A stretch of 64,000 nt of DNA, taken from the NCBI GenBank assembly GCA_028826165.1, contig JAPDFW010000115.1:118564-182563 (forward strand), given 5' to 3'. Positions 11,232 to 59,471 of this stretch are shown piece after piece. The notes beneath the pieces were generated by a model. It saw only the letters and a list, made by a program, of their open reading frames with translations, was not told the origin of the DNA and did not search any database. The stretch's first letter is position 1; each line of letters opens with the position of its first letter. Origin of the DNA: Anaeramoeba ignava BMAN (taxonomy: Eukaryota > Protista > Anaeramoebae). The translations under genes were made by a program, and so were the position numbers.

Positions 11232-11420
11232 TTTTTGAATTTTTTAAATTTTTAACGGAAAAAAAAAAAGGAAAAAAAATGAAAAAAAAATGAAAAATGA
11301 TTTTTGTTTTTTTGATCTTTTTCTTTTTTGATCAATTTTAATTAAATTTTTTTTTTTTATCCCTTTTCTTTTTTTCCTAATTAAATTTAATTTTAGATTT
11401 TGATTTAGCAAAACAACAAT

Positions 11421-14400: not shown

Positions 14401-16178
14401 TTAATAATTTTATATAAATAAATAGAATAAAAATAAATAAATACATTTTGAATTAATTTATAAATAATATTTATTAATTGATATTAAATTAAATATTAAA
14501 TTAATATTTATTTAAATTATTAAATAAAATTAAATAAAAAGTGGAATAAATAAATAAAATATTTTAATAATTTTATATAAATAAATAGAATAAATAAATA
14601 TATAAATACATTTTTGAATTAAATTATAAATAATATTTATTAATTAATATTAAATTAAATATTAATTTAATATTTATATAAATTATTAAATAAAAATTAA
14701 ATAAAAAGTGGAATAAATAAATAAAATATTTTTGATAATTTTATATAAATAAATAGAATAAATAAATAAATAAATACATTTTGAATTAAATTATAAATAA
14801 TATTTATTAATTAATATTAAATTAAATATTAAATTAATATTTATTTAAATTATTAAATAAAATTAAATAAAAAAAGTGGAATAAATAAATAAAATATTTT
14901 TTAATAATTTTATATATAAATAAATAGAATAAATAAATATATAAATACATTTTGAATTAAATTATAAATAATATTTATTAATTAATATTAAATTAAATAT
15001 TAATTTAATATTTATATAAATTATTAAATAAAATTAAATAAAAAAAAGTGGAATAAATAAATAAAAATATTTTTGATAATTTTATATAAATAAATAGAAT
15101 AAAAATAAACAAATAGATTTTGAATTAATTTATAAATAATATTTATTAATTAATATTAAATTAAATATTAAATTAATATTTATTTAAATTATTAAATAAA
15201 ATTAAATAAAAAGTGGAATAAATAAATAAAATATTTTTAATAATTTTATATAAATAAATAGAATAAATAAATATATAAATACATTTTTGAATTAAATTAT
15301 AAATAATATTTATTAATTAATATTAAATTAAATATTAAATTAATATTTATTTAAATTATTAAATAAAATTAAATAAAAAGTGGAATAAATAAATAAAATA
15401 TTTTTAATAATTTTATATAAATAAATAGAATAAATAAATATATAATATATTTTGAATTAAATTATAAATAATATTTATTAATTAATATTAAATTAAATAT
15501 TAATTTAATATTAATATAAATTATTAAATAAAATTAAATAAAAAGTGGAATAAATAAATAAAATACTTTTTGATAATTTTATATAAATAAATAGAATAAA
15601 TAAATAAATAAATATATTTTGAATTAAATTATAAATAATATTTATTAATTAATATTAAATTAAATATTAAATTAATATTATTTAAATTATTAAATAAAAT
15701 TAAATAAAAAAAAGTGGAATAAATAAATAAAATATTTTTAATAATTTTATATAAATAAATAGAATAAATAAATAAATAAATACATTTTGAATTAATTTAT
15801 AAATAATATTTATTAATTGATATTAAATTAAATATTAAATTAATATTTATTTAAATTATTAAATAAAATTAAATAAAAAAAAGTGGAATAAATAAATAAA
15901 ATATTTTTAATAATTTTATATAAATAAATAAAATAAATAAATATATAAATATATTTTGAATTAATTTATAAATAATATTTATTAATTAATATTAAATTAA
16001 ATATTAAATTAATATTTATTTAAATTATTAAATAAAATTAAATAAAAAAAAGTGGAATAAATAAATAAAATATTTTTGATAATTTTATATAAATAAATAA
16101 AATAAATAAATATATAAATACATTTTGAATTAAATTATAAATAATATTTATTAATTGATATTAAATTAAATATTAATT
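11421..16178. repeat. Tandem satellite, ~168-bp unit, ~28 copies
   Basis: The marker AAAAGTGGAATAAATAAATAAAATA recurs 28 times between ~11525 and ~16052 (mean spacing ~168 bp). Units differ by homopolymer length and a few substitutions. Confidence 0.96.
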
Positions 16179-16314
16179 TCCAATCCAAAAAATTTTTTTT
16201 TTTTCAAATAAATTTTTTTTCATTTTTTTTTTTACTTTTTCTTAATTTCAATTTTTTTTCTTTGCTTTTTTCGTTTATTTCTTCTTCTTCAATTTTATTA
16301 TTTTTTTTATTTGA

Positions 16315-42109: not shown

Positions 42110-45100
42110 ATGTCAGATGAATTAAATCCAAAAAAATATTTAAAGAAAATGAATCAAAAACTTCAAGCGGATCTTCAAAAAAAAATTCAAGAAGTTGAAA
42201 GATTACAATCAATTTTGAATACAAAACCTCCAACAAATTTCCAACTTTTTGAAAGACAAACAATAAAATTATTAGAAGGAATAATAACAAAAAAAGACTA
42301 TCATAAAAAACGTAAAAATTTAAATTAAAAAAAAAAGGAAAAAAAGGAAAAAAGCAAAAAATTCTTTTAAAAATTAAAATTAAAATTAAAATTTATATTA
42401 AAATTTGTTTTGTTTTTAGACAATATTACTATTTCTGATATTGCTCAATTTATGTCAAGCTTTCCAAATAATTATTTAATTCAAATCGATTCTTGTTTTG
42501 TTTTACAGAAACTTGCTATTGAATCTGAAAGTAAGTTTCATTTTAAATCTTTTTTTTTATTTTTAATTTAATTTATTTAATTTTTTAATTTATTTAAAAA
42601 AGAGAACCAAAATGAAGTTTTAAATTCTAAAGCTATTGGTTTAATTATTAAAGCAATGAATAATTTTCCTAATAATGAACAAGTTCAATTTATTTGTTGT
42701 GGAGCTTTAAGGAATATTGCAATTAGTTATTGTAAAATTAAAATTAAAATTCATTTATAGAATTAAAATTAAAATTAAAATTAAAATTAAAATTAAAATT
42801 AAAATTAAAATTCATTTATAAAATTAAATTTAAATTTAAAATTAAAAAGCCAATAAGATTGAAATTAGAAATGTAGAAGGAATTCAAGCAATTATGAAAG
42901 CAATGACTAATTTTTCAACAAATGAAATGATACAATCTATGGCATGCTCAGCTTTAATGATGATTTCTTTTGATAATGGTAATTTAATTTAATTTAAATT
43001 AAATTAAATTAAATCAAATGAAAAAAAGGAATTAATTTTTTTTGGAAAATTTGAAATTAGAAAATAAGACTCAAATTCGAGATTTAGAAGCAATTGAATT
43101 AATAATAAGATCAATTCAAAACTTCCCAAAAAGTCAACAAATCCAAAAAAATGCATGTGGTTGTTTAATGAATCTTTCTTTTGAGGCTTGTAAAAATAAA
43201 AATTTGAAAATTAAAAAAAAATTGTTTTGATTTATTGTTAATATTTAATTTAGCTTGTCATCAAATTATTCGAGAATTATCAGGAATTGAATTGGTAATT
43301 CAATCAATGAATAATTTTCCAAATGTTCAATCAATTCAAAATGAAGGATGTAATATTTTATGCAATATGATTTTTAACAATGGTAATTAATACCAAAAAA
43401 TAATATTTAAATAGAAAATCAAAAAATATTATTTAAAAACCAAAAAATATTATTTAAATAGAAAATCAAAAAATATTATTTAAATAGAAAACCAAAAAAT
43501 ATTATTTAAAAATCAAAAAATAATATTTAAAAATCAAAAAATATTATTTAAAAATCAAAAAATAATATTTAAAAATCAAAAAATATTATTTAAAAATCAA
43601 AAAATAATATTTAAAAATCAAAAAATATTATTTAAAAATCAAAAAATAATATTTAAAAATCAAAAAATATTATTTAAAAATCAAAAAATATTATTTAAAA
43701 ATCAAAAAATAATATTTAAAAATCAAAAAATATTATTTAAAAATCAAAAAATAATATTTAAAAATCAAAAAATATTATTTAAAAATCAAAAAATATTATT
43801 TAAAAATCAAAAATATTATTTAAAAATCAAAAATATTATTTAAAAATCAAAAATATTATTTAAAAATCAAAAATATTATTTAAAAATCAAAAATATTATT
43901 TAAAAATCAAAAATATTATTTAAAAATCAAAAATATTATTTAAAAACCAAAAATAATATTTAAAAATCAAAAATAATATTTAAATAGAAAATCAAAAATA
44001 TTATTTAAATAGAAAATCAAAAATATTATTTAAAAATCAAAAATATTATTTAAAAATCAAAAATATTATTTAAATAGAAAATCAAAAATATTATTTAAAT
44101 AGAAAATCAAAAAATATTATTTAAAAACCAAAAATATTATTTAAAAATCAAAAATAATATTTAAAAATCAAAAATATTATTTAAAAAGAAAATCAAAAAT
44201 AATATTTAAAAATCAAAAATAATATTTAAAAATCAAAAATATTATTTAAAAACCAAAAATATTATTTAAAAATCAAAAAATAATATTTAAAAATCAAAAA
44301 ATAATATTTAAAAATCAAAAAATATTATTTAAAAACCAAAAAATAATATTTAAAAATCAAAAAATATTATTTAAAAATCAAAAAATAATATTTAAAAATC
44401 AAAAAATATTATTTAAAAAGAAAATCAAAAAATAATATTTAAAAATCAAAAAATATTATTTAAAAATCAAAAAATATTATTTAAAAATCAAAAAATAATA
44501 TTTAAAAATCAAAAAATATTATTTAAATAGAAAACCAAATGGAGTTTATCCAATCAGGAAGAATGAATCCAATTCTTAATGCAATGAAGAATTTTCCTAA
44601 AAATGAAGATCTTCAATGGAAAGCATGTGGAATTTTATCAATGACTTCTCAAATAAGAGGTAATTAAAAAAGAATAACAAAAAAAAAATAATTACAAGAA
44701 AACATCAATTTTTACAAATATAATCTATTATTAGGAATCCAACAAGAAATTGTTGATGGAAAAGGAATTGAATTAATTATTAATGCAATGAAAAATTTCC
44801 CTAAAAACGAAGATCTTCAATGGAAAGGATTTTCATCTTTTGGGAATTTCCTTTCAAATTCTGGTAAAAAAATATAAAAAATATAAATATAAAAATATAA
44901 TTAAAAATATAAAATATAAAATATATTAGGAAATCAAAACCAAATGGTGCAATTAGGAGCAATTCAAATACTTATTGATACAATGAAAAATTTTCCAACA
45001 AACTTAACTATCAATACACAAGGTTCTGGAACTTTATTTCATTTTGCTATGAAACAAGGTATTTTAAATCAGAATATTTCATTTAAGAATAAAATTTTTT

Positions 45101-45449: not shown

Positions 45450-45734
45450 AGCAATCACTTCCGAAAATTTCCAAATTTCATTTATCATTTCAAATATCGA
45501 AATGATTTTTCTTTTTCTTTTTCTTTTTTTTCTCTTTTTTCATATTCTTTTTCAAAACAACAGCTAATTAAAACAAATCAAAACAAATCAAAATCAAAAT
45601 CAAAATCAAAATCAAAATCAAAACCAAATTTTTTCTTATTTATTTTTGATTGGTTTTGGATTTTAAAATTGAAATTGAAATTGAAATTAAAATTGAAATT
45701 GAATTTAAATTTGAATTTGAAATTGAATTTGAAA

Positions 45735-48700
45735 TTAAATATCTAAATCAAGTTCAAGTTCTTGTGCTTCTTTGATTTTTTTTCTTGGATTTTTGGATTT
45801 GTTTCTTTTTTTCTTCTTATATAGAATAACTCCAATAATAATTGCTGAAATAACAAGAATAGGAATAACTACTCCAAGTGCTATTGCTGTTGTGTTTGTT
45901 GAATTATCACTTGCTTGATTTGGAGATGATATTGTAATTGATGTTGTTGAATTAATTCCTGAATATTCATTAAATGAACAATTTAAATCAGCTGATGAAT
46001 AAATTGAAATTTCATAATATTCTCCTCCTTGTAATCCTGTAACTGAATAATCTGTTGTTAAATTTGTTAAACAAATTGAAGTTGAATTATAATTGAATGA
46101 ATATGCTTTTAATCCACTTGATAAAATTAATGAATTCCAACTACACTCAAATCCATTAATTAATGAATTACAATTTAATGAAGTAATATTTCCTAATTTA
46201 GCTCTTGTTGGATTAATTGAACTAGGTAATCCTAAACATGGTGTTTCACAATTCAAATCTGAACATCCTCGAATTGAAATATTATATTCAATATTTCCTG
46301 ATATTCCACTTATAGTTCCAATAGCTTCATTTCCACTTAAATCAAGAGATGTAAACTTTTGCCAATTTGTTCCATTATCAAGTGAAATTGAATAATTATT
46401 TGCATTTGTTAATTTTGTGAAATTAAATTCAATTTCTTCAATTTTAGAAATTGTTTCATAAATTGTTGGAGCAGGTAAAATATCAGTTGTAATTGATGTT
46501 GTTGAATTAATTCCTGAATATTCATTAAATGAACAATTTAAATCAGCTGATGAATAAATTGAAATTTCATAATATTCTTCTCCTTGTAACCCTGTGACTG
46601 AATAATCTGTTGTTAAATTTGTTAAACAAATTGAAGTTGAATTATAATTGAATGAATATGCTTTTAATCCACTTGATAAAATTAATGAATCCCAACTACA
46701 TTCAAATCCATTAATTAATGAAGAACAATTTAATGAAGTAATATTTCCTAATTTAGCTCTTGCTGGATTAATTGAACTAGGTAATCCTAAACATGGTGTT
46801 TCACAATTTAAATCTGAACATCCTCGAATTGAAATATTATATTCAATATTTCCTGATATCCCACTTATGATTCCAATAACTTCATTTCCACTTAAATCAA
46901 GAGATGTAAACTTTTGCCAATTTGTTCCATTATCAAGTGAAATTGAATAATTATTAGCATTTGTTAATTTTGTGAAATTAAATTCAATTTCTTCAATTTT
47001 AGAAATTGTTTCATAAATTGTTGGAGCTGGTAAAATATCAGTTGTAATTGATGTTGTTGAATTAATTCCTGAATATTCATTAAATGAACAATTTAAATCA
47101 GCTGATGAATAAATTGAAATTTCATAATATTCTTCTCCTTGTAACCCTGTAACTGAATAATCTGTTGTTAAATTTGTTAAACAAATTGAAGTTGAATTAT
47201 AATTGAATGAATATGCTTTTAATCCACTTGATAAAATTAATGAATCCCAACTACATTCAAATCCATTAATTAATGAAGAACAATTTAATGAAGTAATATT
47301 TCCTAATTTAGCTCTTGTTGGATTAATTGAACTAGGTAATCCTAAATATGGTGTTTCACAATTTAAATCAACACATCCTCGAATTGAAATATTATATTCA
47401 ATATTTCCTGATATTCCACTTATGATTCCAATAGCTTCATTTCCACTTAAATCAAGAGATGTAAACTTTTGCCAATTTGTTCCATTATCAAGTGAAATTG
47501 AATAATTATTTGCATTTGTTAATTTTGTGAAATTAAATTCAATTTCTTCAATTTTGGAAATTGTTTCATAAATTGTTGGAGCTGTTAAATTATCAGTTGT
47601 AACTGAAATTGTTGAAATATATCCACATTTATCATTTGAATCACATGCCGATACATTGATTTGATATTCTTGATTTGGGAATTGAGCTGTGAATTGTTGA
47701 TTTGTTGATGTTGGTTGATAATTTCCAGAATCATTTTGAGAAATTGATTGATAAGTAAAATTATAATAAGATGGAATTGAACAATTAATTGGTTGATTCC
47801 AATTACAATTAATATCTATTGTATTTGAAATTGAACATGTTAAACTTGTAACTTCTCCAAATATTAATGAAATTGATGATTCAACAATTTCTCCTTTATC
47901 ATCTCCTTCACATTCATGTGTTCTACATCCACAAATTGAAATATTATAATCATTCCCACATTCTAAATTATTCAAAAGATAATCAAGTGAAGAATTATCA
48001 ACTGAAATGAAAGATATTAAATCAGGTTGAGATTGAGTGAGATAAGAAAGATTATAATGATCAAGATGAGCAATTCCTCCATTGATCTGAACATTTGGAT
48101 AATTCCAAGTAACATTAATTGAATAATTTGAAGGATTTGATAATTGGAAATCATTTACAGAATCAATTTTTGTTGTTAAATTAACAAAAGAAGAAGGTTC
48201 ACCACATATCATTGTTGCATTACCACAAGCTTTGATTTGAATTGGATAATATTCATTTCCTGTAATATTATCATAAGTTGAAGAATTAAATTGTTGATAA
48301 TAAACATTCCCATCTTCAAGAATTGGAGAATCAATATCAATCCAATCATATCCATAATTGATTTGATAAATCAAATTTGGAATTTGAATTTCATCCCAAT
48401 AACAATCAAATGATGAAAACAAAGATGAGCAATTAACAATATTAACTTGAGGAATTAAAAAAGCTTCATAAACAAATGCTTTATTAGTCCACTGCGTTCC
48501 AACAACAGTAAAATTCCCATAAATTGAAACAGAAATTCCAAAATCTGAAGATGATTGAGTTAAATTTTGTTCTTCATTCCAAATTGTTCCATTATATCTG
48601 TAAACAAATGCTTGTTTTGTATCATAAGCACCAACACCAATAACATCTCCATAAACTGAAACACTCCATCCAAAACTTGAAGATGAAGGTCCAGTTAAAA

Positions 48701-49544
48701 TTTGTTCTTCATTCCAATTTGCTTCATTATATCTGTAAATAAATGCTTGTTCTCCAGAATCAGCACCAACAACAAGAACATCTCCATCAACTGAAACGCT
48801 TATTCCAAAATCTGACCATCCAGGTCCACTTAAAACTTGTTCTTGATTCCAAATTGATCCATCGTATCTGTAAATATATGCTTGATCTGAACCAGAAGCT
48901 CCAACAACAGTGACATTATCATAAACCGAAACACTTATTCCAAAACTGAAAACTGAACCTTCGTTGATATTTTGATCAAGATTCCAATCTGTCCCATTAT
49001 ATCTGTAAATGAATACTTGTCTTCCTTCATCAGTCCCAATAGCAGTAACATTCCCATGAATTGAAACACTCCATCCAAAATTTGTAATCACTTCATTGAG
49101 AAATTTTTCTTCGTTCCAATATGTTCCATTATATCTGTAAATAAATACTTGATTTGCATAATACGCTCCAATAACAGTAACATTTTCATAAACTGAAACA
49201 CTTATTCCAAAGCCTGTATCCGTGGGTGTGGAGAAATTTTGTTCAAGATTAAAATTTGTTCCATTATATCTGTAAATAAATGCTTGATTTTCATGATCAT
49301 CTCCTACAACAAGAACATCTTTATAAACTGAAACAGAAGATCCAAAATATGGTGGACCTATGATTGTATCAAATAAACTCCAAAACCAAGCTTCATCTGG
49401 AGTAGAATAATATCTTGTTGTTCCTGTTAATCTTTCTGTTTCTATTGATGAAATTACTGATGAAATTGTTTTTTGATCAGTTTGAATTGATTGAATTAAG
49501 AAAATATTAAGAATTAAGAAAAAAAAGAAAAGAATTGATTTCAT
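45735..49544 (-). CDS. Type I surface receptor, copy A: signal peptide, 7 FG-GAP-like propeller blades, FN3-like stalk with 3 x 185-aa repeats, TM, short basic tail
   Basis: Intronless 1269-aa ORF. Seven FG.SVS....V.V.G...Q.FIYRYNG..W..EQ units; FN3-like motifs (W..P...G..HY.LSY, Y.ISI); 555-nt triple repeat; TM AIALGVVIPILVISAIIIGVILY followed by KKKKR. Confidence 0.9.
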   Translation of the reverse strand: MKSILFFFFLILNIFLIQSIQTDQKTISSVISSIETERLTGTTRYYSTPDEAWFWSLFDTIIGPPYFGSSVSVYKDVLVVGDDHENQAFIYRYNGTNFNLEQNFSTPTDTGFGISVSVYENVTVIGAYYANQVFIYRYNGTYWNEEKFLNEVITNFGWSVSIHGNVTAIGTDEGRQVFIYRYNGTDWNLDQNINEGSVFSFGISVSVYDNVTVVGASGSDQAYIYRYDGSIWNQEQVLSGPGWSDFGISVSVDGDVLVVGADSGEQAFIYRYNEANWNEEQILTGPSSSSFGWSVSVYGDVIGVGAYDTKQAFVYRYNGTIWNEEQNLTQSSSDFGISVSIYGNFTVVGTQWTNKAFVYEAFLIPQVNIVNCSSLFSSFDCYWDEIQIPNLIYQINYGYDWIDIDSPILEDGNVYYQQFNSSTYDNITGNEYYPIQIKACGNATMICGEPSSFVNLTTKIDSVNDFQLSNPSNYSINVTWNYPNVQINGGIAHLDHYNLSYLTQSQPDLISFISVDNSSLDYLLNNLECGNDYNISICGCRTHECEGDDKGEIVESSISLIFGEVTSLTCSISNTIDINCNWNQPINCSIPSYYNFTYQSISQNDSGNYQPTSTNQQFTAQFPNQEYQINVSACDSNDKCGYISTISVTTDNLTAPTIYETISKIEEIEFNFTKLTNANNYSISLDNGTNWQKFTSLDLSGNEAIGIISGISGNIEYNISIRGCVDLNCETPYLGLPSSINPTRAKLGNITSLNCSSLINGFECSWDSLILSSGLKAYSFNYNSTSICLTNLTTDYSVTGLQGEEYYEISIYSSADLNCSFNEYSGINSTTSITTDILPAPTIYETISKIEEIEFNFTKLTNANNYSISLDNGTNWQKFTSLDLSGNEVIGIISGISGNIEYNISIRGCSDLNCETPCLGLPSSINPARAKLGNITSLNCSSLINGFECSWDSLILSSGLKAYSFNYNSTSICLTNLTTDYSVTGLQGEEYYEISIYSSADLNCSFNEYSGINSTTSITTDILPAPTIYETISKIEEIEFNFTKLTNANNYSISLDNGTNWQKFTSLDLSGNEAIGTISGISGNIEYNISIRGCSDLNCETPCLGLPSSINPTRAKLGNITSLNCNSLINGFECSWNSLILSSGLKAYSFNYNSTSICLTNLTTDYSVTGLQGGEYYEISIYSSADLNCSFNEYSGINSTTSITISSPNQASDNSTNTTAIALGVVIPILVISAIIIGVILYKKKKRNKSKNPRKKIKEAQELELDLDI
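45925..47600. repeat. Three tandem 555-bp coding repeats in copy A (mirrored at ~51135-52810 in copy B)
   Basis: The antisense shadow ORFs recur every 555 bp (46093/46648/47203; 51302/51857). Confidence 0.93.
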
Positions 49545-50100
49545 TGTTTTGTTTTTATTGTTTTTTTCCTATTTGTTTTTTTTTTTGATTAAAAAAGGAA
49601 TTAGATTTAATATAATTATTATTGTTTCTTCTTTTTTGAGTTTTTTTTTTTAAAGTAAATTAGATTTTTTTTTCTTACTTTTTTAATTGAAAAAAAAAAC
49701 ACTCGTATTAAATGAAAATAGAAAATGAAAAAGAAAAATGATCGATTCTTTTATTTTTTAATTTAAAAAAAAAATTTTTTTTTTCTTTTTATTCCTTTTT
49801 TTTTTAATTTAAAAATAATAATTAAAATGAAAATAAAAATAAAAATAAAATAGGGGATCTAATTTATTAAAGAAAAAATTAATTATTTCTTTTTTGCTAT
49901 TTTGGAAATAAACAATTTAAATTTAATTTTAAAAACAGATCTTATTTATTAATTAAAATGAAAAGCTTTTTTTTTTGGTTCAAATCTTCAAAAGATCAAA
50001 TTTAAATTTAAATTTAAAAAATAAAATTTCAGTTATTAATTAAATTAAAAACAGATCTTATTTATTAATTAAAAAAAAAATTTTAATTTTGATTTTGATT

Positions 50101-50709
50101 TTAATTATTAAATTTATTAATTAATAAATCAAATAAATTTGGATTTGTTTGATTTAATTGAAAATAATCAATTCCAATTTTAATTTCATCAATAATTTCT
50201 TGTGTAATTTGAATTTCATTTTTAATTTGATTTGAATAAATCCAATATTCAAATATTTGAAATGATTTATTACTTAATTCACTATAATCTGTAACTTTAT
50301 TAGAAGTATCATTTGTTACAGATAAAAACATTCCTCGATATAATTCATTTCTCATTATTAATATTAATTTAGGAAATTTATATTGTTTTTCTTTTCTTTC
50401 AATAATAAAATCTTTTTCATTTTCATTTTCATTTAAATAAATTCTTTTAATTGTTTCTTCAATTTTTTCATTTGAATTTATAATTTCTTTAATTTCAGAA
50501 TATAACTTTAGATTTATTTTGGAATTATTTGAATAAATCATTTCAAATATTTGATTTGATTCTTTAATTGATTTTTTTGAAATAATTTCTTGAAGTTTTT
50601 CAATTTGATTTTGATTTTGATTTAATCTATATTTCAATATTAATTTATGAGTTTCAATTATTTCTCCATTTTCGGTTTTAAATGAAATATTACAAAATTC
50701 TTTTCTTCC
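50101..50709 (-). pseudogene. 5'-truncated duplicate (BTB half only) of the RCC1-BTB gene
   Basis: Near-identical to 55242-55849 but starts abruptly at ...RKEFCNISFK with no upstream ATG or RCC1 region; the frame is still open to the stop. Confidence 0.8.
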
Positions 50710-50943
50710 AAGAAAAAAAAAATGAAAAAGAAAAAATGTTTGAAATTGATTTTTGTTTTTGGAATTTTGAAAAAAAAAAAGGGAAAAAAAAGGAATGAAA
50801 GAAAAAAGAAGGAAATTGAATTTGATTTAGATTTTGAAATTGAAATTGAATTTAAATTTTGAAATTGAAATTAAAATTGGAATTGAAATCAAAATTTAAA
50901 TTTGAATTTAAATTTGAATTTTGAATTTAAATTTGAATTTGAA

Positions 50944-53900
50944 TTAAATATCTAAATCAAGTTCAAGTTCTTGTGCTTCTTTGATTTTTTTTCTTGGATT
51001 TTTGGATTTGTTTCTTTTTTTCTTCTTATATAGAATAACTCCAATAATAATTGCTGAAATAACAAGAATAGGAATAACTACTCCAAGTGCTATTGCTGTT
51101 GTGTTTGTTGAATTATCACTTGCTTGATTTGGAGATGATATTGTAATTGATGTTGTTGAATTAATTCCTGAATATTCATTAAATGAACAATTTAAATCAG
51201 CTGATGAATAAATTGAAATTTCATAATATTCTCCTTCATTTAACCCTGTAACTGAATAATCTGTTGTTAAATTTGTTAAACAAATTGAAGTTGAATTATA
51301 ATTGAATGAATATGCTTTTAATCCACTTGATAAAATTAATGAATCCCAACTACATTCAAATCCATTAATTAATGAATTACAATTTAATGAAGTAATATTT
51401 CCTAATTTGGCTCTTGTTGGATTAATTGAACTAGGTAATCCTAAACATGGTGTTTCACAATTCAAATCTGAACATCCTCGAATTGAAATATTATATTCAA
51501 TATTTCCTGATATTCCACTTATAGTTCCAATAGCTTCATTTCCACTTAAATCAAGAGATGTAAACTTTTGCCAATTTGTTCCATTATCAAGTGAAATTGA
51601 ATAATTATTAGCATTTGTTAATTTTGTGAAATTAAATTCAATTTCTTCAATTTTGGAAATTGTTTCATAAATTGTTGGAGCTGGTAAAATATCAGTTGTA
51701 ACTGAAATTGTTGAATTAATTCCTGAATATTCATTAAATGAACAATTTAAATCAGCTGATGAATAAATTGAAATTTCATAATATTCTTCTCCTTGTAACC
51801 CTGAAACTGAATAAATTGTTGTTAAATTTGTTAAACAAATTGAAGTTGAATTATAATTGAATGAATATGCTTTTAATCCACTTGATAAAATTAATGAATC
51901 CCAACTACATTCAAATCCATTAATTAATGAAGAACAATTTAATGAAGTAATATTTCCTAATTTAGCTCTTGCTGGATTAATTGAACTAGGTAATCCTAAA
52001 CATGGTGTTTCACAATTCAAATCTGAACATCCTCGAATTGAAATATTATATTCAATATTTCCTGATATTCCACTTATGATTCCAATAGCTTCATTTCCAC
52101 TTAAATCAAGAGATGTAAACTTTTGCCAATTTGTTCCATTATCAAGTGAAATTGAATAATTATTAGCATTTGTTAATTTTGTGAAATTAAATTCAATTTC
52201 TTCAATTTTAGAAATTGTTTCATAAATTGTTGGAGCTGGTAAAATATCAGTTGTAATTGATGTTGTTGAATTAATTCCTGAATATTCATTAAATGAACAA
52301 TTTAAATCAGCTGATGAATAAATTGAAATTTCATAATATTCTTCTCCTTGTAACCCTGTAACTGAATAATCTGTTGTTAAATTTGTTAAACAAATTGAAG
52401 TTGAATTATAATTAAATGAATATGCTTTTAATCCACTTGATAAAATTAATGAATCCCAACTACATTCAAATCCATTAATTAATGAATTACAATTTAATGA
52501 AGTAATATTTCCTAATTTAGCTCTTGTTGGATTAATTGAACTAGGTAATCCTAAATATGGAGTTTCACAATTTAAATCAACACATCCTCGAATTGAAATA
52601 TTATATTCAATATTTCCTGATATTCCACTTATGATTCCAATAGCTTCATTTCCACTTAAATCAAGAGATGTAAACTTTTGCCAATTTGTTCCATTATCAA
52701 GTGAAATTGAATAATTATTTGCATTTGTTAATTTTGTGAAATTAAATTCAATTTCTTCAATTTTGGAAATTGTTTCATAAATTGTTGGAGCTGTTAAATT
52801 ATCAGTTGTAACTGAAATTGTTGAAATATATCCACATTTATCATTTGAATCACATGCCGATACATTGATTTGATATTCTTGATTTGGGAATTGAGCTGTA
52901 AATTGTTGATTTGTTGAAGTTGGTTGATAATTTCCAGAATCATTTTGAGAAATTGATTGATAAGTTAAATTATAATAAGATGGAATTGAACAATTAATTG
53001 GTTGATTCCAATTACAATTAATATCTATTGTATTTGAAATTGAACATGTTAAACTTGTAACTTCTCCAAATATTAATGAAATTGATGATTCAACAATTTC
53101 TCCTTTATCATCTCCTTCACATTCATGTGTTCTACATCCACAAATTGAAATATTATAATCATTCCCACATTCTAAATTATTCAAAAGATAATCAAGTGAA
53201 GAATTATCAACTGAAATGAAAGATATTAAATCAGGTTGAGATTGAGTGAGATAAGAAAGATTATAATGATCAAGATGAGCAATTCCTCCATTGATCTGAA
53301 CATTTGGATAATTCCAAGTAACATTAATTGAATAATTTGAAGGATTTGATAATTGGAAATCATTTACAGAATCAATTTTTGTTGTTAAATTAACAAAAGA
53401 AGAAGGTTCACCACATATCATCGTTGCATTACCACAAGCTTTGATTTGAATTGGATAATATTCATTTCCTGTAATATTATCATAAGTTGAAGAATTAAAT
53501 TGTTGATAATAAACATTCCCATCTTCAAGAATTGGAGAATCAATATCAATCCAATCATATCCATAATTGATTTGATAAATCAAAGTTAAAGAAAATTCAA
53601 TTTCATCCCAATAACAATCAAATGATGAAAACAAAGATGAACAATTAACAATATTAACTTGAGGAATTAAAAAAGCTTCATAAACAAATACTTGATTTTG
53701 ATCATACGTTCCAACAACAGTAAAATTCCCATAAATTGAAACATAATTTCCAAATTCTGAAACAGAAGGTTCATTGAAAATTTCTTCTTGATTCCAAATT
53801 GTTCCATTATATCTGTAAACAAATGCTTGTTTTCCAGTAAAAGTTCCAACAATAAGAACATCTCCATAAACCGAATTAGAATAACCAAAATCTGTATCTG

Positions 53901-54750
53901 ATTTACTCAAAATTTGTTCTTGATTCCAAACTGATCCATTATATCTGTAAACAAATGTTTCATTTTGATCATAAGCCCCAACAAGAAGAACATCTTCATC
54001 AATTGAAAGACTTATTCCAAAACTTATAGGTGATTCAGTCAAATTTTGTTCTAGATTCCAATATGTTCCATTGTATCTGTAAATAAATACTTGATTTTGA
54101 CCATAAGTCCCAACAACAGTAACATTCCCAGAAACTGAAACACTTATTCCAAAACCGAAAATTGAACCTTCAATGATATTTTGATCAAGATTCCAATCTG
54201 TCCCATTATATCTGTAAATGGATACTTGATTTGCATTAGGATCTCCAACAACAATAACATTCCCAGAAACTGAAATAGCCGATCCAAAAGTTGGAGTTGC
54301 TTGACTTAAAACTTGTTCTTGATTCCAAATTGATCCATTATATCTGTAAACAAAAACTTGGCTTGTATCAGAATTACCAACAACAGTAACATTCCCAGAA
54401 ACTGAAACAGAAGATCCAAAATTTGAAACTGATTCAGTTAAATTTTGTTCAAGATTAAAATTTGTTCCATTATATCTGTAAATAAATGTTTGATTTGCTT
54501 GACATGCACCAATAACAAGAACATCTCCAGAAATTGAAACAGAAGATCCAAAATTTCCTGAACCTGAAAAATTATCAAATAAATTCCAAAACCAACCTTC
54601 ATCTGGAGTAGAATAATATCTTGTTGTTCCTGTTAATCTTTCTGTTTCTATTGATGAAATTACTGATGAAATTGTTTTTTGATCAGTTTGAATTGATTGA
54701 ATTAAGAAAATATTAAGAATTAAGAAAAAAAAGAAAAGAATTGATTTCAT
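50944..54750 (-). CDS. Type I surface receptor, copy B (paralog of 45735-49544)
   Basis: Intronless 1268-aa ORF with the same architecture. First 51 aa and TM/tail identical, stalk near-identical, propeller divergent. Confidence 0.9.
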   Translation of the reverse strand: MKSILFFFFLILNIFLIQSIQTDQKTISSVISSIETERLTGTTRYYSTPDEGWFWNLFDNFSGSGNFGSSVSISGDVLVIGACQANQTFIYRYNGTNFNLEQNLTESVSNFGSSVSVSGNVTVVGNSDTSQVFVYRYNGSIWNQEQVLSQATPTFGSAISVSGNVIVVGDPNANQVSIYRYNGTDWNLDQNIIEGSIFGFGISVSVSGNVTVVGTYGQNQVFIYRYNGTYWNLEQNLTESPISFGISLSIDEDVLLVGAYDQNETFVYRYNGSVWNQEQILSKSDTDFGYSNSVYGDVLIVGTFTGKQAFVYRYNGTIWNQEEIFNEPSVSEFGNYVSIYGNFTVVGTYDQNQVFVYEAFLIPQVNIVNCSSLFSSFDCYWDEIEFSLTLIYQINYGYDWIDIDSPILEDGNVYYQQFNSSTYDNITGNEYYPIQIKACGNATMICGEPSSFVNLTTKIDSVNDFQLSNPSNYSINVTWNYPNVQINGGIAHLDHYNLSYLTQSQPDLISFISVDNSSLDYLLNNLECGNDYNISICGCRTHECEGDDKGEIVESSISLIFGEVTSLTCSISNTIDINCNWNQPINCSIPSYYNLTYQSISQNDSGNYQPTSTNQQFTAQFPNQEYQINVSACDSNDKCGYISTISVTTDNLTAPTIYETISKIEEIEFNFTKLTNANNYSISLDNGTNWQKFTSLDLSGNEAIGIISGISGNIEYNISIRGCVDLNCETPYLGLPSSINPTRAKLGNITSLNCNSLINGFECSWDSLILSSGLKAYSFNYNSTSICLTNLTTDYSVTGLQGEEYYEISIYSSADLNCSFNEYSGINSTTSITTDILPAPTIYETISKIEEIEFNFTKLTNANNYSISLDNGTNWQKFTSLDLSGNEAIGIISGISGNIEYNISIRGCSDLNCETPCLGLPSSINPARAKLGNITSLNCSSLINGFECSWDSLILSSGLKAYSFNYNSTSICLTNLTTIYSVSGLQGEEYYEISIYSSADLNCSFNEYSGINSTISVTTDILPAPTIYETISKIEEIEFNFTKLTNANNYSISLDNGTNWQKFTSLDLSGNEAIGTISGISGNIEYNISIRGCSDLNCETPCLGLPSSINPTRAKLGNITSLNCNSLINGFECSWDSLILSSGLKAYSFNYNSTSICLTNLTTDYSVTGLNEGEYYEISIYSSADLNCSFNEYSGINSTTSITISSPNQASDNSTNTTAIALGVVIPILVISAIIIGVILYKKKKRNKSKNPRKKIKEAQELELDLDI

Positions 54751-55241
54751 TGTTTTGTTTTTATTGTTTTTTTCCTAATTGTTTTTTTTTTTGATTAAAA
54801 AAGGAATTAGATTTAATATAATTATTATTTCTTCTTTTTTGAGTTTTTTTTTTTAAAGTAAATTAGATTTTTTTTTCTTACTTTTTTAATTGAAAAAAAA
54901 AACACTCGTGTCAAATGAAAATAGAAAAATGAAAAAGAAAAATGATCGATTCTTTTATTTTTAATTTAAAAATTTTTCTTTTTATTCCTTTTTTTTAAAA
55001 ATAAAAATTAAAAGAAAATAAATTAAAAATAAAAAGAATAAATTAAAAGAAAAATTAAATTTCTTTTTGCTATTTTGAAATAAACAATTTAAAAATAAAG
55101 TAGTTAAAAATAAAGTAGAAATTAAAATGAAATTAAGATTAAAAAAGATAAATTAATTAAAAGTAAATTTCAGTTATTAATTAAATTAAAAATAGATCTT
55201 ATTTATTAATTAAAAAAAAAATTTTAATTTTGATTTTGATT

Positions 55242-57002
55242 TTAATTATTAAATTTGTTAATTAATAAATCAAATAAATTTGGATTTGTTTCATTTAATT
55301 GAAAATAATCAATTCCAATTTGAATTTCATCAATAATTTCTTGTGTAATTTGAATTTCATTTTTAATTTGATTTGAATAAATCCAATATTCAAATATTTG
55401 AAATGATTTATTACTTAATTCACTATAATCTGTAACTTTATTAGAAGTATCATTTGTTACAGATAAAAACATTCCTCGATATAATTCACTTCTCATTATT
55501 AATATTAATTTAGGAAATTTATATTGTTTTTCTTTTCTTTCAATAATAAAATCTTTTTCATTTTCATTTTCATTTAAATAAATTCTTTTCATTGTTTCTT
55601 CAATTTTTTCATTTGAATTTATAATTTCTTTAATTTCAGAATATAATTTTGGATTTATTATTCTGTTTGAATAAATCATTTCAAATATTTGATTTGATTC
55701 TTTAATTGATTTTTTTGAAATAATTTCTTGAAGTTTTTCAATTTGATTTTCATCTTGATTTAATCTATATTTCAATATTAATTTATGAGCTTCAATTATT
55801 TCTTCATTTTCGGTTTTAAATGAAATATCACAAAATTCCTTTCTTTCAAATATTTTTATCAAATCTTCTTCAAGATTAGAAAAAGAAGGAGGAGAATAAT
55901 AAAGAAATGATCTGTAATATCCACAAAGAACATGATAATTGGAAATATCTTCATTAAATCTTAATTTAGGAAGTTCAATTTGAATTGGAATTGATTGAAT
56001 ATAGGTATCTCCAGTTCCTAATTGACCAAAATAATTAATTCCAAATCCTATTAATTTTGAATTGTATGTTAAAATCAAAGTATGACCATTTCCAACAGAA
56101 AAATCAAAAATATAATCATTTTCAAATAAAGATGATTTGATTTCAGTAAATTCATTTGTATTTTTATTTTGGCCAAGTCCATTAGAATCATAATGACCAC
56201 ACGAATAAAGTTTTCTTTTTGGATTTTCATCTTCATTTTCAATCAACATTATTAAAAAAGAGTTTCCACATTGAATATCAATTATTTCTCCTTTTGGAAT
56301 ATTTTGGATTTTGGTTAATTTTTGGATTTCTAATTCTTTTCTTGATTCACCTAATCCAAGTTGACCAGAATAATTATAGCCACATCCAAATAATTCTTGA
56401 TTTGAATTTAAAAGAAAAACAAAATGAGAACAATTTCCTGAAAATATTTTAGAAACATTTTTCATCATTAAAATTGGTTTTTCTGTTTCTTCAAGTGTTT
56501 CAGAATCAAAACCAAGTTGACCATATTGATTTGAGCCAATTCCATAAGCATTTTGATTTGAAGTTAATAAATAAATTGAATAAGCACCAGAAACAATATT
56601 TTGAATTATTCTATCATTTGTATCTTCAATTAATGATGAAATATTGATAAATTCTTTTGGATTATTTGTATTAATATCTTTTCCTTTGGCAAATACATTT
56701 CCTTTTATTGTTAAAATAGCTTCATTTTGAACACCAACAGTTACTTTTTGAATATTTTCTTCAATTTGGATTTTTTCAGGATTTTGATTTGAATCTTTTT
56801 CATTTAAATATTCTATTGCTTTTCCATTTTTAAAAAGGAAAATTGTTGAAAATTTGCCTGTTGAAATTTGTTTAATTTGTTTTTCATTTTCATTTTCATT
56901 TTCATTTTCAAATTTAAATTGAATTGGTTTTGTTATTTTATCTGGTTTATTTTTGATAAGAATTGGATATTTATTTCTTCCAAAAAATATAATTTCATTC
57001 AT
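55242..57002 (-). CDS. RCC1-repeat + tandem BTB/POZ protein
   Basis: RCC1 motifs GSNQYGQLG, GYNYSGQLGLG, GNGHTLIL, GINYFGQLGTG. BTB motifs FCDISF..AHKLIL and KDFII...LILIMRSELYRGMF...YWIYS. Confidence 0.92.
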   Translation of the reverse strand: MNEIIFFGRNKYPILIKNKPDKITKPIQFKFENENENENEKQIKQISTGKFSTIFLFKNGKAIEYLNEKDSNQNPEKIQIEENIQKVTVGVQNEAILTIKGNVFAKGKDINTNNPKEFINISSLIEDTNDRIIQNIVSGAYSIYLLTSNQNAYGIGSNQYGQLGFDSETLEETEKPILMMKNVSKIFSGNCSHFVFLLNSNQELFGCGYNYSGQLGLGESRKELEIQKLTKIQNIPKGEIIDIQCGNSFLIMLIENEDENPKRKLYSCGHYDSNGLGQNKNTNEFTEIKSSLFENDYIFDFSVGNGHTLILTYNSKLIGFGINYFGQLGTGDTYIQSIPIQIELPKLRFNEDISNYHVLCGYYRSFLYYSPPSFSNLEEDLIKIFERKEFCDISFKTENEEIIEAHKLILKYRLNQDENQIEKLQEIISKKSIKESNQIFEMIYSNRIINPKLYSEIKEIINSNEKIEETMKRIYLNENENEKDFIIERKEKQYKFPKLILIMRSELYRGMFLSVTNDTSNKVTDYSELSNKSFQIFEYWIYSNQIKNEIQITQEIIDEIQIGIDYFQLNETNPNLFDLLINKFNN

Positions 57003-57048: not shown

Positions 57049-59471
57049 TTAAATTTTAAATTGGGAAAATTCCATTTTCTTTTTTTGAAAATCTCTCAAA
57101 TTCTTCATTTTTGGTTTTGAATTATTTTGTAAATGATTTGGTTTAAATTGATTTTTAAATTTAATTTTCTTTTTTTGATTAAAATTTGAATTCATTTCCA
57201 AATCATTTAAGGAAGAAAACCTTTTCCAAAAATTATTTGATTCCAATTCTTTCATTTTCAAAATCAACCAAATTAATTTTTCTTTTTCATTATTTTTCAT
57301 TTTTTGGAGTTTGACAATTTTTCTTTTTTTTCTACAACAACAACGATAAATTCTTTTGCGACAACAACAAAAAACACAACAAAGAATCAAACCAAAAGTA
57401 ATTCCAATTAAAGACCAATTTAAAGATTGAAAAACACTTGGTTTTTGAGTATCCAAATTTGGTATTTGATTTCTACACCATTGGAAAACTCCATTAGAAT
57501 CGAGACCATTAGTGAATCCCTTATCACAAATACAAGAGGTATTATCTTCTGTTAATTTTCCATGTGAACCACAATCAGCATAAGTATTATTTAAGAAATC
57601 AGAGATGTTCCCTGTATAAACATCCTCAGCTTCAAAATCAGACCAAGTTTCTACATATTGTGAGTTATTATTTGTATTCGAATCTAAACACACATTTGAT
57701 ATATAATTAAGGATCTCATTTCCACTGCATTCTTTAAAGGGTTCACATAAACCTGTTTGTGGATTGTAAAAATCCCTTTTATTTTCACTTGTGAAATATT
57801 TACTTGAGCAATTAACAGGAATACAACTTTGAGTTGTTTCATTGAATTCTTGATCTTCAGTGCAAGCTGGTTGGCAATATCTGATTGCTCCTCCAAGTGT
57901 TACTTCACGAGATGGACTTGTGCAAATTGGGTTATTTGAGTTCATCACAAATCCTTTTGAAAAAATATCATTTGGATCATTTGTTCCAAATCCGATTTCA
58001 TGAACTGAATCCAATCTTCCATTTTGTAGGATTGCATATGTGCAATTTCCTTCTTGATCAATAGTTGAATTTGAGTTTAAATTAAATCTAAAATTGATCA
58101 CTTCTTTTGAAGTTATGCTTTTTGATATTGATGATCCAATCTGGATTGCAGAACAATCAACTATAAATTCAGAACCTGTTTCATCTTCTGTTTTTTTCAG
58201 ATTATTCAAACAACAGTTTCTTGGTTGAATTTCAATTGTTCCATTGTAAATTGCTTCATTTTCTACATCAATAAATAAAATTCCTGAAGTTTGATTTATA
58301 AATTGAATTCCACTATCAATTACTTTAATTTGAGGAATTTCTTTTGTAAAACTTAATCCTGTTGAGCCAATTTCCATTGTGATTTGAATGAAATCTGAGC
58401 TTATATTATCACAAATAAAGCTTTCTGAAAATGTTGATGATTTCAAAGGATCTAAACTTGATAAATTTTGATTAAAATAACACCCAATTTGAGAAGAAAT
58501 GAAATTGTTTTGAAATTTGGATAATTGATTATGAATTGAGCCATTCATTACTGAAATGAGATCTTTAGGTGGACAAGTTTGTTTTTCAATATATTTTTCT
58601 TTACTGATTCCAATTTTATTGACAGAGTTGTTGAATTCATTTTTTGGAATCAAAAAAGGTTCATTATCTAAAGATAAATTTTCACTTTGAATTGCTAAAA
58701 AGAAATTTTCAAATTGGGAATAAATTGGATTCAAATTATCTGATTTAATTTGAGCTGAAATTGAATTATTTATATTTTTTTGTTCTCCTCCAATCTCCAA
58801 ATTTAAATCCCATATTTTGTCTTGTTGATTAACATGAATTTTGGTTGTCCAAATTAGAAGAGGAGAAAAAATATCAAACAAATAAAAAATACTATCATTT
58901 TGGGATAAACTAAAACATTGTGACTCACAACAAAAACAATCATTTGGACAATTATCATTTGAAATATTGTTTGATATTTGGAAAGCATTTTGGAAATTTG
59001 TTTTAAAAGAAAGTGGAAAAAAAAGTTGAGATTTTTTTTCAATTTGAATTTTGATTGGATTTTCAATATTCCATTTTCTTCCTATTGAATCAATTAAAAT
59101 ATCTTCTGAATTCAATGTTAAATTATAATTCCAATTATTTGGTTCATTAAAAATTGATAAATTCATTTGCCATTTTGAATCACATCTTTATAAAAAACAA
59201 AATTAAATTAAATTTAAATTAAATTTAAATTAAATTAAATTAAATTAAATTTAAATTAAATTAAATTAAATTAAATTTAAATTAGATTAAATTAGATTAA
59301 ATTAAATTAAGATTAAAATTGATCAATTTGATCTTTTTTTTTTGGAATAAATTTTGTTTTTTTTTTTACAAACATTGTTTCATCAGAACAAAGAATTATT
59401 TCATTTTTGGAAATAAATTCAGATTTTAATTTAATAATTAAAAAGAAGAAAAAGATTAATTTTTTGAACAT
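57049..59471 (-). CDS. Divergent HAP2/GCS1-like class II fusion protein (fusexin) with added Cys-rich/EGF stalk
   Basis: Exons 59471-59374 and 59185-57049 (GT-AG, phase 2; 744 aa). After the signal peptide, colinear HAP2-like motifs: ISKNEIILC...CDSKWQMNLSI; NPIKIQIEKKSQLFFPLSF; FCC; QCFSL...FYLFDI; PFLIPKNEF..NKIGIS....Q.C...S.HNQL. Then an Ig-like domain III, a single TM and a Cys-rich polybasic tail CCCRKRIYRCCCRKKRK. Confidence 0.78.

Follow-up and report, generated by a model that had tools for sequence, protein, structure and literature searches.

Divergent propeller heads on near-identical stalks in a tandem pair of putative receptor genes of Anaeramoeba ignava

Free-living protists must tell food, partners and enemies apart, and to our knowledge very few receptors that serve them in this recognition have been described. 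Anaeramoeba ignava also keeps sulfate-reducing bacteria (Desulfobacter symbionts) in a surface-connected symbiosome. Large or polymorphic families of type-I surface proteins, in which a variable ectodomain is joined to a conserved membrane-proximal or tail part, include the Giardia VSPs, the Trichomonas BspA-like proteins and TgrB1/TgrC1 of Dictyostelium; their folds (Cys-rich, LRR and IPT/TIG) are unlike the propeller described below. In integrin alpha, the loops equivalent to those considered here (4-1 and 2-3) build the ligand-binding upper face of the propeller. In Podospora anserina, the WD40 propellers of the HNWD genes (het-d, het-e and relatives) form a non-self recognition repertoire (PMC1805685, PMC2873952).

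The two genes analysed here, A and B, come from a family that is specific to this lineage and counts at least 55 genes in A. ignava, about the number of full-length heads found by whole-genome protein and DNA searches. Their products are type-I membrane proteins with an integrin-alpha-like propeller (the head), an FN3-type stalk, a TM helix and a conserved C-terminal motif. A literature search found no paper treating this family.

The tandem locus

The window, i.e., the whole stretch of 64,000 nucleotides that was analysed (contig JAPDFW010000115.1, forward-strand positions 118,564 to 182,563), is situated at a contig end, at which no telomere was seen. Its relevant features, in window positions, are as follows.

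45663-50711, strand not applicable: tandem duplication unit 1 (3' flank, gene A, intergenic DNA and a truncated BTB piece)
45735-49544, minus strand: gene A, intronless ORF of 1269 aa
45738-45818, minus strand: 27-aa tail of A, from sequence, with the acidic C-terminal family motif at its end
45819-45887, minus strand: TM helix of A (aa 1220-1242), predicted from sequence
45932-47616, minus strand: three tandem stalk repeats of A, 555 nt (185 aa) each, mutual identity 96.5-97.3%
48465-49391, minus strand: head of A, codons 52-360 (309 codons), seven blades, pLDDT 93-98
49392-49544, minus strand: first 51 codons of gene A, for the signal peptide and the N-terminal linker, with 0 of 153 nt differing from gene B
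49545-49886, minus strand: promoter/5'UTR DNA of A (proximal upstream part), with an identity of 94-100% to its counterpart in B
50003-50711, minus strand: truncated BTB-end copy of the upstream gene, with an ORF of 178 aa at 50101-50637, 97% identical to its source
50871-55849, strand not applicable: tandem duplication unit 2 (3' flank, gene B, intergenic DNA and the 3' part of the RCC1-BTB gene)
50944-54750, minus strand: gene B, intronless ORF of 1268 aa, architecture as gene A
51141-52825, minus strand: three tandem stalk repeats of B, 555 nt each
53674-54597, minus strand: head of B, codons 52-359
55242-57002, minus strand: complete RCC1-repeat and BTB gene of 586 aa, upstream of gene B

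Gene A encodes, in this order, a signal peptide, a seven-blade FG-GAP_2 propeller, the FN3-type stalk, the TM helix and a short basic/acidic tail. A sequence-only reading of the window had called the two paralogs identical over their first 51 residues, near-identical from YEAFLIPQV to the C-terminus, and far more divergent in the propeller itself, and alignment bears this out on all three counts. In the protein alignment residues 1-51 are identical, residues 52-360 show 54-66% identity per 50-aa window, and the identity is 96-100% from about residue 400 to the C-terminus; between the end of the propeller and the stop codon the two genes are 98-100% identical. Overall, the two heads are 78% identical in nucleotides and 59% in amino acids. 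The divergent block starts sharply at its 5' edge and fades out at its 3' edge, where identity is about 95% over codons 361-400.

The same picture was obtained from DNA in windows of 100 nt, in which A and B are 73-86% identical in the head and 94-100% identical in the stalk, the 3' end, the signal-peptide region and the proximal upstream DNA, as well as in the truncated BTB copy. Expressed as mismatch fractions, the head stands at 0.217, the stalk at 0.012 (33 of 2730 positions, plus one indel), the BTB fragment at 0.030 and the signal-peptide region at zero. High similarity upstream, which the sequence-only reading had noted for the proximal DNA and the BTB copies, is confined to the proximal part and the BTB piece, since the distal AT-rich intergenic DNA (about 49886-50100) is 73-88% similar and carries indels. 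Silent differences at conserved residues follow the same division: 21 of 115 sites in the head (0.182) and 15 of 576 in the stalk (0.026), i.e., the silent divergence is about sevenfold higher in the head.

The hypervariable face of the propeller is under diversifying selection

Both heads belong to Pfam PF14312 (FG-GAP_2), with whole-protein scores of 83.5 bits for A (E=1.1e-23) and 80.3 bits for B at a gathering cut-off of 23 bits, and the stalk matches PF00041 (fn3, E=8e-14 in A) with a weak Ig_2 match besides. AlphaFold (AF2) modelled the propeller as seven blades of four strands (pLDDT 93-98), and the top 50 Foldseek matches to the model, which spans 525 residues, about 115 of them disordered, were all integrin alpha (E from 1.6e-18 to 1e-14, TM-score about 0.5). 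Conservation extends to the TM helix and to a basic stretch beside the membrane, and the acidic C-terminal motif, D-L-D-I or a near variant, is present in 14 of 18 aligned full-length genes.

When the differences between A and B were placed on the AF2 strand assignment, 86% of the residues in the 2-3 loops and 75% of those in the 4-1 loops were found to differ, compared with 21-37% of those in strands, 1-2 loops and 3-4 loops. In the model, the 2-3 and 4-1 loops together form one face of the propeller, opposite the exit of the stalk. The loop peptides that the sequence-only reading had quoted are present, and the variable sites cluster on this one face rather than being scattered. In every blade the hypervariable positions are the residues flanking FG and the three after GA, about five per blade, with about 35 or more on one face of the confidently modelled propeller. 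N-glycosylation sequons have the opposite distribution: a head carries about 7.8 of them on its 1-2 and 3-4 loops, and the 4-1 loops lack them. The hypervariable face is almost free of sequons, and the opposite face is sequon-rich and conserved.

A fast-evolving head on a constant scaffold is found throughout the family: the heads of other members are 52-61% identical in amino acids to that of A or B, and their stalks are 84-88% identical to that of A. Most members have about 900-970 aa, i.e., about 300-370 aa fewer than A and B, many lie near contig ends, and large tandem arrays occur. The protein-level analyses covered 51 genes, among which each of the 14 top loops occurs as 40-50 distinct peptides, and the entropy is 2.27 bits in the 2-3 loops and 1.62 bits in the 4-1 loops, as compared with 0.6-0.9 bits in the framework and 0.34 bits in the stalk. 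Blade framework, stalk and tail are conserved.

The codon analyses covered 23 of the about 55 or more genes. Maximum-likelihood (ML) estimates of omega for the top loops were 1.75 (GY+F3X4), 3.3 (GY+F1X4) and 3.6 (MG+F3X4), against 0.74-1.3 for the remaining head and 0.23-0.45 for the stalk. A likelihood-ratio test (LRT) of the top loops against omega=1 gave 2dlnL=17.6 (p=2.7e-5) on a long tree of about 19 substitutions per codon, recombination breaking the single-tree assumption of this test; for the framework omega was below 1 (0.74, p=0.002). The variable sites thus do not show a dN/dS far below 1, and diversifying selection in the head loops, one of the two options offered by the sequence-only reading, stands. 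The estimates depend on the codon-frequency model, with 0.96 (GY+F3X4) and about 2.2 (NG86) for the whole head. The NG86 value was distrusted in this genome of about 80% A+T, for which ML with F3X4 gives the lower figure, and the argument was therefore built on structural partitions and the LRT, with the stalk for internal control. Among close pairs of genes, six of which are independent, nonsynonymous and synonymous differences numbered 257:20 in the top loops, 294:49 in the rest of the head and 192:76 in the stalk, with pS similar in all three; the nonsynonymous/synonymous excess of the top loops over the stalks is fivefold (Fisher's test, p=5e-11).

Origin of the A and B heads

Selection alone cannot account for the A/B pair, because the silent sites are also seven times more diverged in the head, and selection as the sole cause of the contrast was ruled out on this ground. 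In the comparison of head and stalk trees, the two proved incongruent, the head data rejecting the stalk tree (AU p=4e-5) and the stalk data rejecting the head tree (p=2e-79); a PHI-type test found recombination within the head (p=0.004). The history is therefore mosaic as well as selected, given the silent divergence and the mutual rejection of the trees, and recombination has decoupled the history of the head from that of the constant part. Recombination probably also homogenises the blade frameworks within a gene in most paralogs: in 16 of 23 genes (p=0.006) the framework identity is higher within the gene than in register between genes, at 0.878 and 0.860 for the family. Such homogenisation was not found in A and B (0.79 and 0.78). 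Between genes, blade identity is slightly higher in register than off register. An exact match of 35 nt connects blade 4 of A with blade 2 of B, out of register; it sits in a conserved strand with biased codons.

Several direct sources for the heads were considered. The protein and DNA searches of the 42.8-Mb assembly yielded no head more than 61% identical in amino acids or 79% in nucleotides to that of A or B, the alignment of sampled heads reaching 80% at most, and in the head tree A and B are sisters (support 94/91 and 94/93), a grouping that could be due to long-branch attraction. A wholesale swap of the head from an extant donor was ruled out on these two results, so that of the proposed head swapping or diversifying selection only the latter was upheld in that form. 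An exchange of blades between A and B is a weak candidate, with an identity of 77.2% in register and 72.9% off register; only blades 1 and 3 are clearly positional in this comparison. DGR-like or template-driven hypermutation found no support either, as no near-identical template copy occurs anywhere in the assembly.

We consider it fairly probable that A and B belong to a diversified family of membrane receptors constituting a germline binding repertoire, and that they carry old heads on a recently homogenised tandem unit. Their heads would be old paralogous heads, with a silent divergence (about 0.18) of whole-family depth, and the remainder of the 5-kb unit would have been homogenised recently, down to a divergence of about 0.01-0.03. 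This probably occurred by gene conversion or unequal crossing-over, either with tracts that ended at the diverged head or with selection against products in which the heads had been homogenised. Each gene would then encode a putative receptor with its own binding specificity, so that the family would amount to a germline repertoire for extracellular ligands, most plausibly bacterial surfaces (prey or Desulfobacter symbionts) or other cells. The role as a receptor is suggested by the architecture and by the evolutionary pattern.

Two courses are conceivable for A and B, a recent homogenisation of their constant parts or a piecemeal overwriting of their heads. The second, a recent duplication of the 5-kb unit (about 3% neutral divergence) followed by patchwork overwriting of one or both heads through ectopic conversion from other family members or blade shuffling, seems unlikely to us; it is the head swapping of the sequence-only reading, but in patches. 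It is the simpler one for the flanks, since at least two conversion events would be required to homogenise both of them as far as the duplication boundary; the high-identity blocks stop exactly at the boundaries of the units, and the truncated, presumably non-functional BTB piece, which serves as a near-neutral age marker for the last duplication or homogenisation, is only 3% diverged. Head replacement would also agree with the incongruent trees found family-wide, with the recombination detected inside the heads and with the out-of-register match. At synonymous sites the head of B is nearer to other paralogs in the main family (0.11-0.15) than to the head of A (0.175), the nearest paralog changes from window to window, some other paralog being closer than the partner in most 50-codon head windows, and one pair (L043/L045) has a head younger than its stalk, with 11 head changes clustered as in micro-conversion. 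However, over stretches of at least 100 nt within the head the identity of A and B never exceeds 86%, which leaves no remnant of a recent common head, the assembly holds no donor above 79-80% nucleotide identity for either head, the nearest-paralog windows never exceed an identity of 0.89, and A and B still stand together in the head tree.

That the contrast arose in the assembly, with divergent alleles or haplotypes laid in tandem or with short-read polishing erasing the differences in stalk and flank, is very improbable. The assembly was indeed built from Nanopore reads with Illumina polishing (PMC11550330), the boundaries of the units lie in AT-rich low-complexity DNA and the window is at a contig end, but the copies are not collapsed, given the 33 stalk differences, the indel and the completeness of each ORF, and the junction of the units contains a specific truncated BTB piece and a 159-nt spacer. 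Tandem pairs with divergent heads and near-identical stalks recur on other contigs (e.g., L037/L026 and L048/L027), and polishing might reduce a divergence of 3% to 1% but could not produce the contrast with a head that is 22% diverged. Less improbable, if still doubtful, is a variable coat, in which the heads would diversify to evade attachment by a virus, a predatory or parasitic microbe or a toxin, and copy-number redundancy, not a set of ligand specificities, would be favoured. It predicts the same signature of omega above 1 on the exposed face, conserved TM helix and tail, tandem arrays and members near contig ends, and the conserved tail recalls families of variant surface proteins; the sequence does not discriminate such escape from recognition, and a conserved, sequon-rich framework with a variable canonical binding face fits binding and escape equally, but a free-living bacterivore faces no adaptive immune host. 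Neutral divergence of decaying or unimportant heads, to which the whole-head omega of 0.96 under GY+F3X4 might point, can hardly be credited, as the pattern of sites already speaks against it: every head sampled for the trees has an open frame and seven intact blades, framework omega is below 1 (0.74) while loop omega exceeds 1, the variation is limited to defined positions in each blade, sequons and core motifs are conserved, and the confidence of the AF2 model is very high.

The preferred reading, that of old heads on a homogenised unit, could be carried further, to a germline innate recognition repertoire of more than 55 integrin-like propeller receptors that was probably seeded by a bacterial FG-GAP_2 gene and whose distal faces, diversified through positive selection and the shuffling of blades and loops, tell bacterial partners apart; Desulfobacter symbionts, for example, would thereby be admitted to the symbiosome and other bacteria ingested as prey. 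This extension is speculative and, taken as a whole, unlikely. The family nevertheless presents a defined candidate recognition set, with at least 55 genes, a single conserved scaffold and one hypervariable face. The A/B pair is a clean natural experiment suited to binding and swap assays, as the two genes share promoter-proximal DNA, signal peptide, stalk and tail and differ in their heads.

Comparison with known systems

In the searches made, the heads' nearest relatives by sequence outside A. ignava are all bacterial FG-GAP_2 proteins (Planctomycetota, Bacteroidota and others; 27-38% identity, E down to 5e-100), and the nearest clusters in the ESM Atlas are bacterial FG-GAP_2 proteins as well. 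Unlike the A. ignava proteins, these have other domain contexts, without the eukaryotic scaffold of signal peptide, FN3, TM helix and tail. A transfer of an FG-GAP_2 gene from bacteria is plausible, and the genome paper lists an FG-GAP repeat among its candidates for lateral gene transfer, in A. ignava only.

Integrin alpha is matched in fold, with an N-terminal seven-blade propeller of FG-GAP type, beta-sandwich domains, a TM helix, a short tail and type-I topology, but the defining integrin features that were tested are absent. The sequence identity of the Foldseek matches is only 11-17%, and the repeats match PF14312, a mostly bacterial family, and not an integrin family. Ca2+-binding hairpins of the DxDxDG type are absent, as every 1-2 loop has two residues (KD, EN, GN and the like) in model and alignment, thigh/calf (Integrin_alpha2) is not among the Pfam matches of the A and B stalks, and the tail, which starts Y-K-K-K-K-R, has no GFFKR motif. 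Nor is integrin alpha a family of at least 55 genes with hypervariable heads. With the Giardia VSP type the A. ignava family has in common a variable ectodomain with a conserved TM helix and C-terminal tail.

The closest mechanistic parallel, by analogy, would be the HNWD repertoire of Podospora. In both cases a multigene family encodes beta-propellers with unusually similar repeats, in which each repeat has a few hypervariable, positively selected positions on the interaction face; repeats are exchanged within and between the HNWD genes, and may be so in A. ignava. HNWD proteins, however, are cytoplasmic and NLR-like, with WD40 repeats in variable number and RIP mutagenesis, whereas the A. 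ignava proteins are extracellular FG-GAP_2 propellers on a conserved stalk, without NLR/STAND architecture, and have seven blades in every gene whose blades were examined, some other ORFs containing partial or multiple propellers; A and B also differ from HNWD in their lack of blade homogenisation. If so, the A. ignava family would be a second, independent instance of a beta-propeller that serves as a diversifiable platform for binding, the first being the fungal HNWD WD40 genes, and here the setting is extracellular and the fold of integrin type.

The tandem pair and its surroundings

The two surface-receptor-like genes, A and B, each lie within one unit of a tandem duplication. Besides the receptor gene, the unit comprises intergenic DNA and a truncated BTB-end copy derived from the RCC1-BTB gene upstream:

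45735-49544, minus strand: gene A, intronless ORF of 1269 aa
50944-54750, minus strand: gene B, intronless ORF of 1268 aa
45663-50711 and 50871-55849: tandemly duplicated units with A and with B, respectively
50101-50637: truncated BTB end of the RCC1-BTB gene, upstream of A
55242-57002: RCC1-repeat and BTB gene, upstream of B

A database model of 1424 aa from elsewhere in the genome (P0038) unites FG-GAP_2, fn3, RCC1 and BTB domains, i.e., receptor-type and RCC1-BTB-type genes adjoin, or were fused by annotation, at a second locus too. The 705-aa ORF at 57049-59166 had no Pfam match with E <= 0.001.

The window corresponds to G000:C116:118564-182563 and reaches the end of its contig (182,563 nt), one of 147 in a 42.8-Mb assembly. 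The A/B pair is located 10-18 kb from this end, and no telomere-like repeat was seen at the end of the window. The window is strongly A+T-rich (GC 2-28% in 2-kb windows); the A. ignava BMAN genome, sequenced by Nanopore and Illumina, is 80.65% A+T (PMC11550330). Two huge tandem arrays of nearly pure A+T (GC 2-4%) occupy 4937-7810 and 11418-16179, the latter with copies ~168 nt apart and ~94% identical, the former being ~74% identical to its reverse complement. A dense short-period tandem repeat at 43389-44539 has copies that are 85-92% identical at many offsets.

Alignment of the A and B proteins showed that residues 1-51 are identical, that residues 52-360, the propeller head, are 54-66% identical, and that the part from ~400 to the end is 96-100% identical. 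At the DNA level, 100-nt windows outside the head were 94-100% identical, except for an AT-rich, indel-prone stretch at ~49886-50100, and those within the head 73-86%. The mismatch fraction was 0.217 in the head, 0.012 from the stalk to the stop, 0.030 in the BTB piece and 0/153 in the signal-peptide region. The sequence-only reading, which had described two paralogs sharing the N-terminus and the C-terminal part around a divergent propeller, was thus confirmed as written.

A family with a constant stalk and a variable head

Six-frame searches of the genome with the A or B head found ~55 loci spanning the whole head. Most are in open frames 850-970 aa long, and tandem arrays account for many of them (contigs C75, C68, C77, C49, C141, C38, C87 and C121). 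Many family loci are found no more than a few tens of kb from the end of a contig, as at C35:591, C38:1263, C87:895, C100:2230, C77:356-413 kb of 416 kb and C55:660 kb of 670 kb. The heads of all ~55 loci are 52-61% identical to that of A or B in amino acids and at most 79% in nucleotides in these searches, the B head being no nearer to the A head than other family heads are; among the sampled paralogs, the highest head identity in nucleotides was 80% over aligned columns (L044). The stalks are 84-88% identical in amino acids across the family, and the combination of a constant stalk with a variable head is therefore a family trait that is not confined to the A/B pair. A 1637-aa open frame at G000:C71:665346-670575, with a database counterpart of 1638 aa (P0002), contains several separate propeller matches and possibly encodes two or more heads. 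In a word-based protein search, the ~70 eukaryotic relatives were all from Anaeramoeba ignava (M0811_ tags), and no description of the family was found among the papers searched.

Pfam matches were to FG-GAP_2 (PF14312, E=1e-23) and fn3. AlphaFold modelling of residues 21-545, based on 51 family members, gave a propeller of seven blades with four strands each (pLDDT 93-98), in which blade 7 is closed by the N-terminal strand (aa 52-62) and the chain exits to the stalk after strand 3 of that blade. From this up-down topology, both termini of the propeller are predicted to lie on the face of the 1-2 and 3-4 loops, with the 2-3 and 4-1 loops on the opposite, distal face. The stalk contains FN3-type domains, among them three repeats of 555 nt with 96.5-97.3% mutual identity, and is followed by a predicted TM helix and a 27-aa tail (45738-45818 in A). 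Most family members share an acidic motif at the end of the cytoplasmic tail, E-L-Q-D-D-L-D-I or near variants, which may serve as a sorting or adaptor-binding signal; among the paralogs L031-L049, two (L033, L041) have the alternative ending G-G-I-E-M-I.

Changes between A and B had been noted to concentrate in the loop before each FG and the loop after each VVG. Mapped on the model, the changes are concentrated in the 2-3 and 4-1 loops of a single face:

Variation by structural class: A-B residues differing; entropy over 23 genes
2-3 loops: 86%; 2.27 bits
4-1 loops: 75%; 1.62 bits
Strands and 1-2/3-4 loops: 21-37%; 0.6-0.9 bits
Stalk: about 1-2%; 0.34 bits

The 14 distal loops each carry 40-50 different peptides among the 51 genes compared. 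The average over blades shows hypervariability (2.7-3.3 bits) directly before and directly after FG and at the three residues that follow GA. N-glycosylation sequons occur on the proximal face, with 5.5 per gene in the 3-4 loops and 2.3 in the 1-2 loops, and none were present in the 4-1 loops of the family genes scanned.

Histories of the head and the constant parts

The divergence of the A and B heads is also silent: at residues identical in both, it was 0.182 in the head (21/115 sites) and 0.026 in the stalk (15/576), which rules out selection alone as the cause of the contrast. The synonymous distance of the B head is 0.11-0.15 to other paralogs and 0.175 to the A head, and for most head windows of 50 codons the nearest sequence is some other paralog and not the A/B partner. 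The A-B stalk dS is 0.027; to the other paralogs it is mostly 0.08-0.11 and reaches 0.20 for the most divergent. Head and stalk trees were mutually rejected (AU p=4e-5 and 2e-79), and a PHI-type permutation test was significant within heads (p=0.004) and not in stalks. Besides selection, a mosaic history is thus indicated. A simple swap of the whole head, one form of the head swapping suggested by the sequence-only reading, is counter-indicated for A and B, as searches of the 42.8-Mb assembly with both heads found no donor, and as A and B are sisters in the head tree (support 94/91, and 94/93 for the central blades).

Taken together, the silent divergence, the sister heads and the missing donor favor the explanation that the heads of A and B would be old and their constant parts recently homogenised. 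The tips leading to A and B measure 0.25 and 0.19 in the head tree but 0.009 and 0.005 in that of the stalk. The main rival is a recent duplication of the unit followed by piecemeal replacement of the head, and its strongest argument is the truncated BTB piece, which is just 3% diverged.

Exchange at the level of blades was indicated across the family, where framework identity among the blades of one gene was 0.878, exceeding the 0.860 of blades in equivalent positions of different genes (16/23 genes, p=0.006) and pointing to homogenisation and exchange of blades. A and B are exceptions to this trend (0.79 and 0.78 within the gene), and their heads are among the most diverged of the family. 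Between them, blades were 77.2% identical in register and 72.9% off register, a slight difference, and a single 35-nt exact match was found two blades out of register.

Selection on the head and comparison with known systems

Median NG86 dN/dS was 2.2 for the head and 0.7 for the stalk; since these ratios are inflated in A+T-rich composition, maximum-likelihood codon models were used instead, with partitions set by structure and not by variability (23 genes; distal loops, 72 codons):

Omega by partition and codon model
Whole head: GY+F3X4 0.96; MG+F3X4 1.61
Stalk: GY+F3X4 0.23; MG+F3X4 0.45
Distal loops: GY+F3X4 1.75; GY+F1X4 3.3; MG+F3X4 3.6
Rest of head: GY+F3X4 0.74; GY+F1X4 1.29; MG+F3X4 1.30

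Fixing omega at 1 in the distal loops gave 2dlnL=17.6 (p=2.7e-5), and omega was below 1 in the rest of the head (p=0.002), values to be read with the small number of genes, the presence of recombination and the long distal-loop tree in mind. A comparison free of site counting was made in six phylogenetically independent close pairs, A-B being left out. Nonsynonymous to synonymous changes were 257:20 in the distal loops (pS 0.072), 294:49 in the rest of the head (pS 0.056) and 192:76 in the stalk (pS 0.048), with p=5e-11 for loops versus stalk (Fisher's test). In the near-identical genes L043 (G000:C75:409211-414143) and L045 (G000:C23:9805-14737), on different contigs, all 11 changes between the heads are nonsynonymous, none synonymous, and several of them fall in neighbouring codons, while the stalks carry 5 synonymous changes; the head changes resemble micro-conversion or positive selection acting very recently. 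The earlier proposal of diversifying selection is therefore supported for the distal loops, with omega above 1 and an excess of nonsynonymous changes in close pairs, although the silent divergence of the A and B heads goes beyond what selection alone would leave.

The likeness to integrin alpha lies in the propeller fold: the best 50 Foldseek matches in the PDB were all integrin alpha subunits (E down to 1.6e-18, 11-17% identity). Of the defining integrin features, those examined (Ca-binding hairpins, Integrin_alpha2 legs and the GFFKR motif) are absent, and the A and B proteins are therefore not integrin alpha. In both searches, the nearest relatives of the heads from organisms other than A. 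ignava were bacterial FG-GAP_2 proteins, and the FG-GAP repeat has been listed among lateral-transfer candidates that A. ignava has and A. flamelloides lacks (PMC11550330). The A. ignava family would plausibly function in recognition. In mechanism, its closest described counterpart is the HNWD family of Podospora, whose WD40 repeats are exchanged both inside a gene and among genes and have four positively selected positions each, on the interaction face (PMC1805685).
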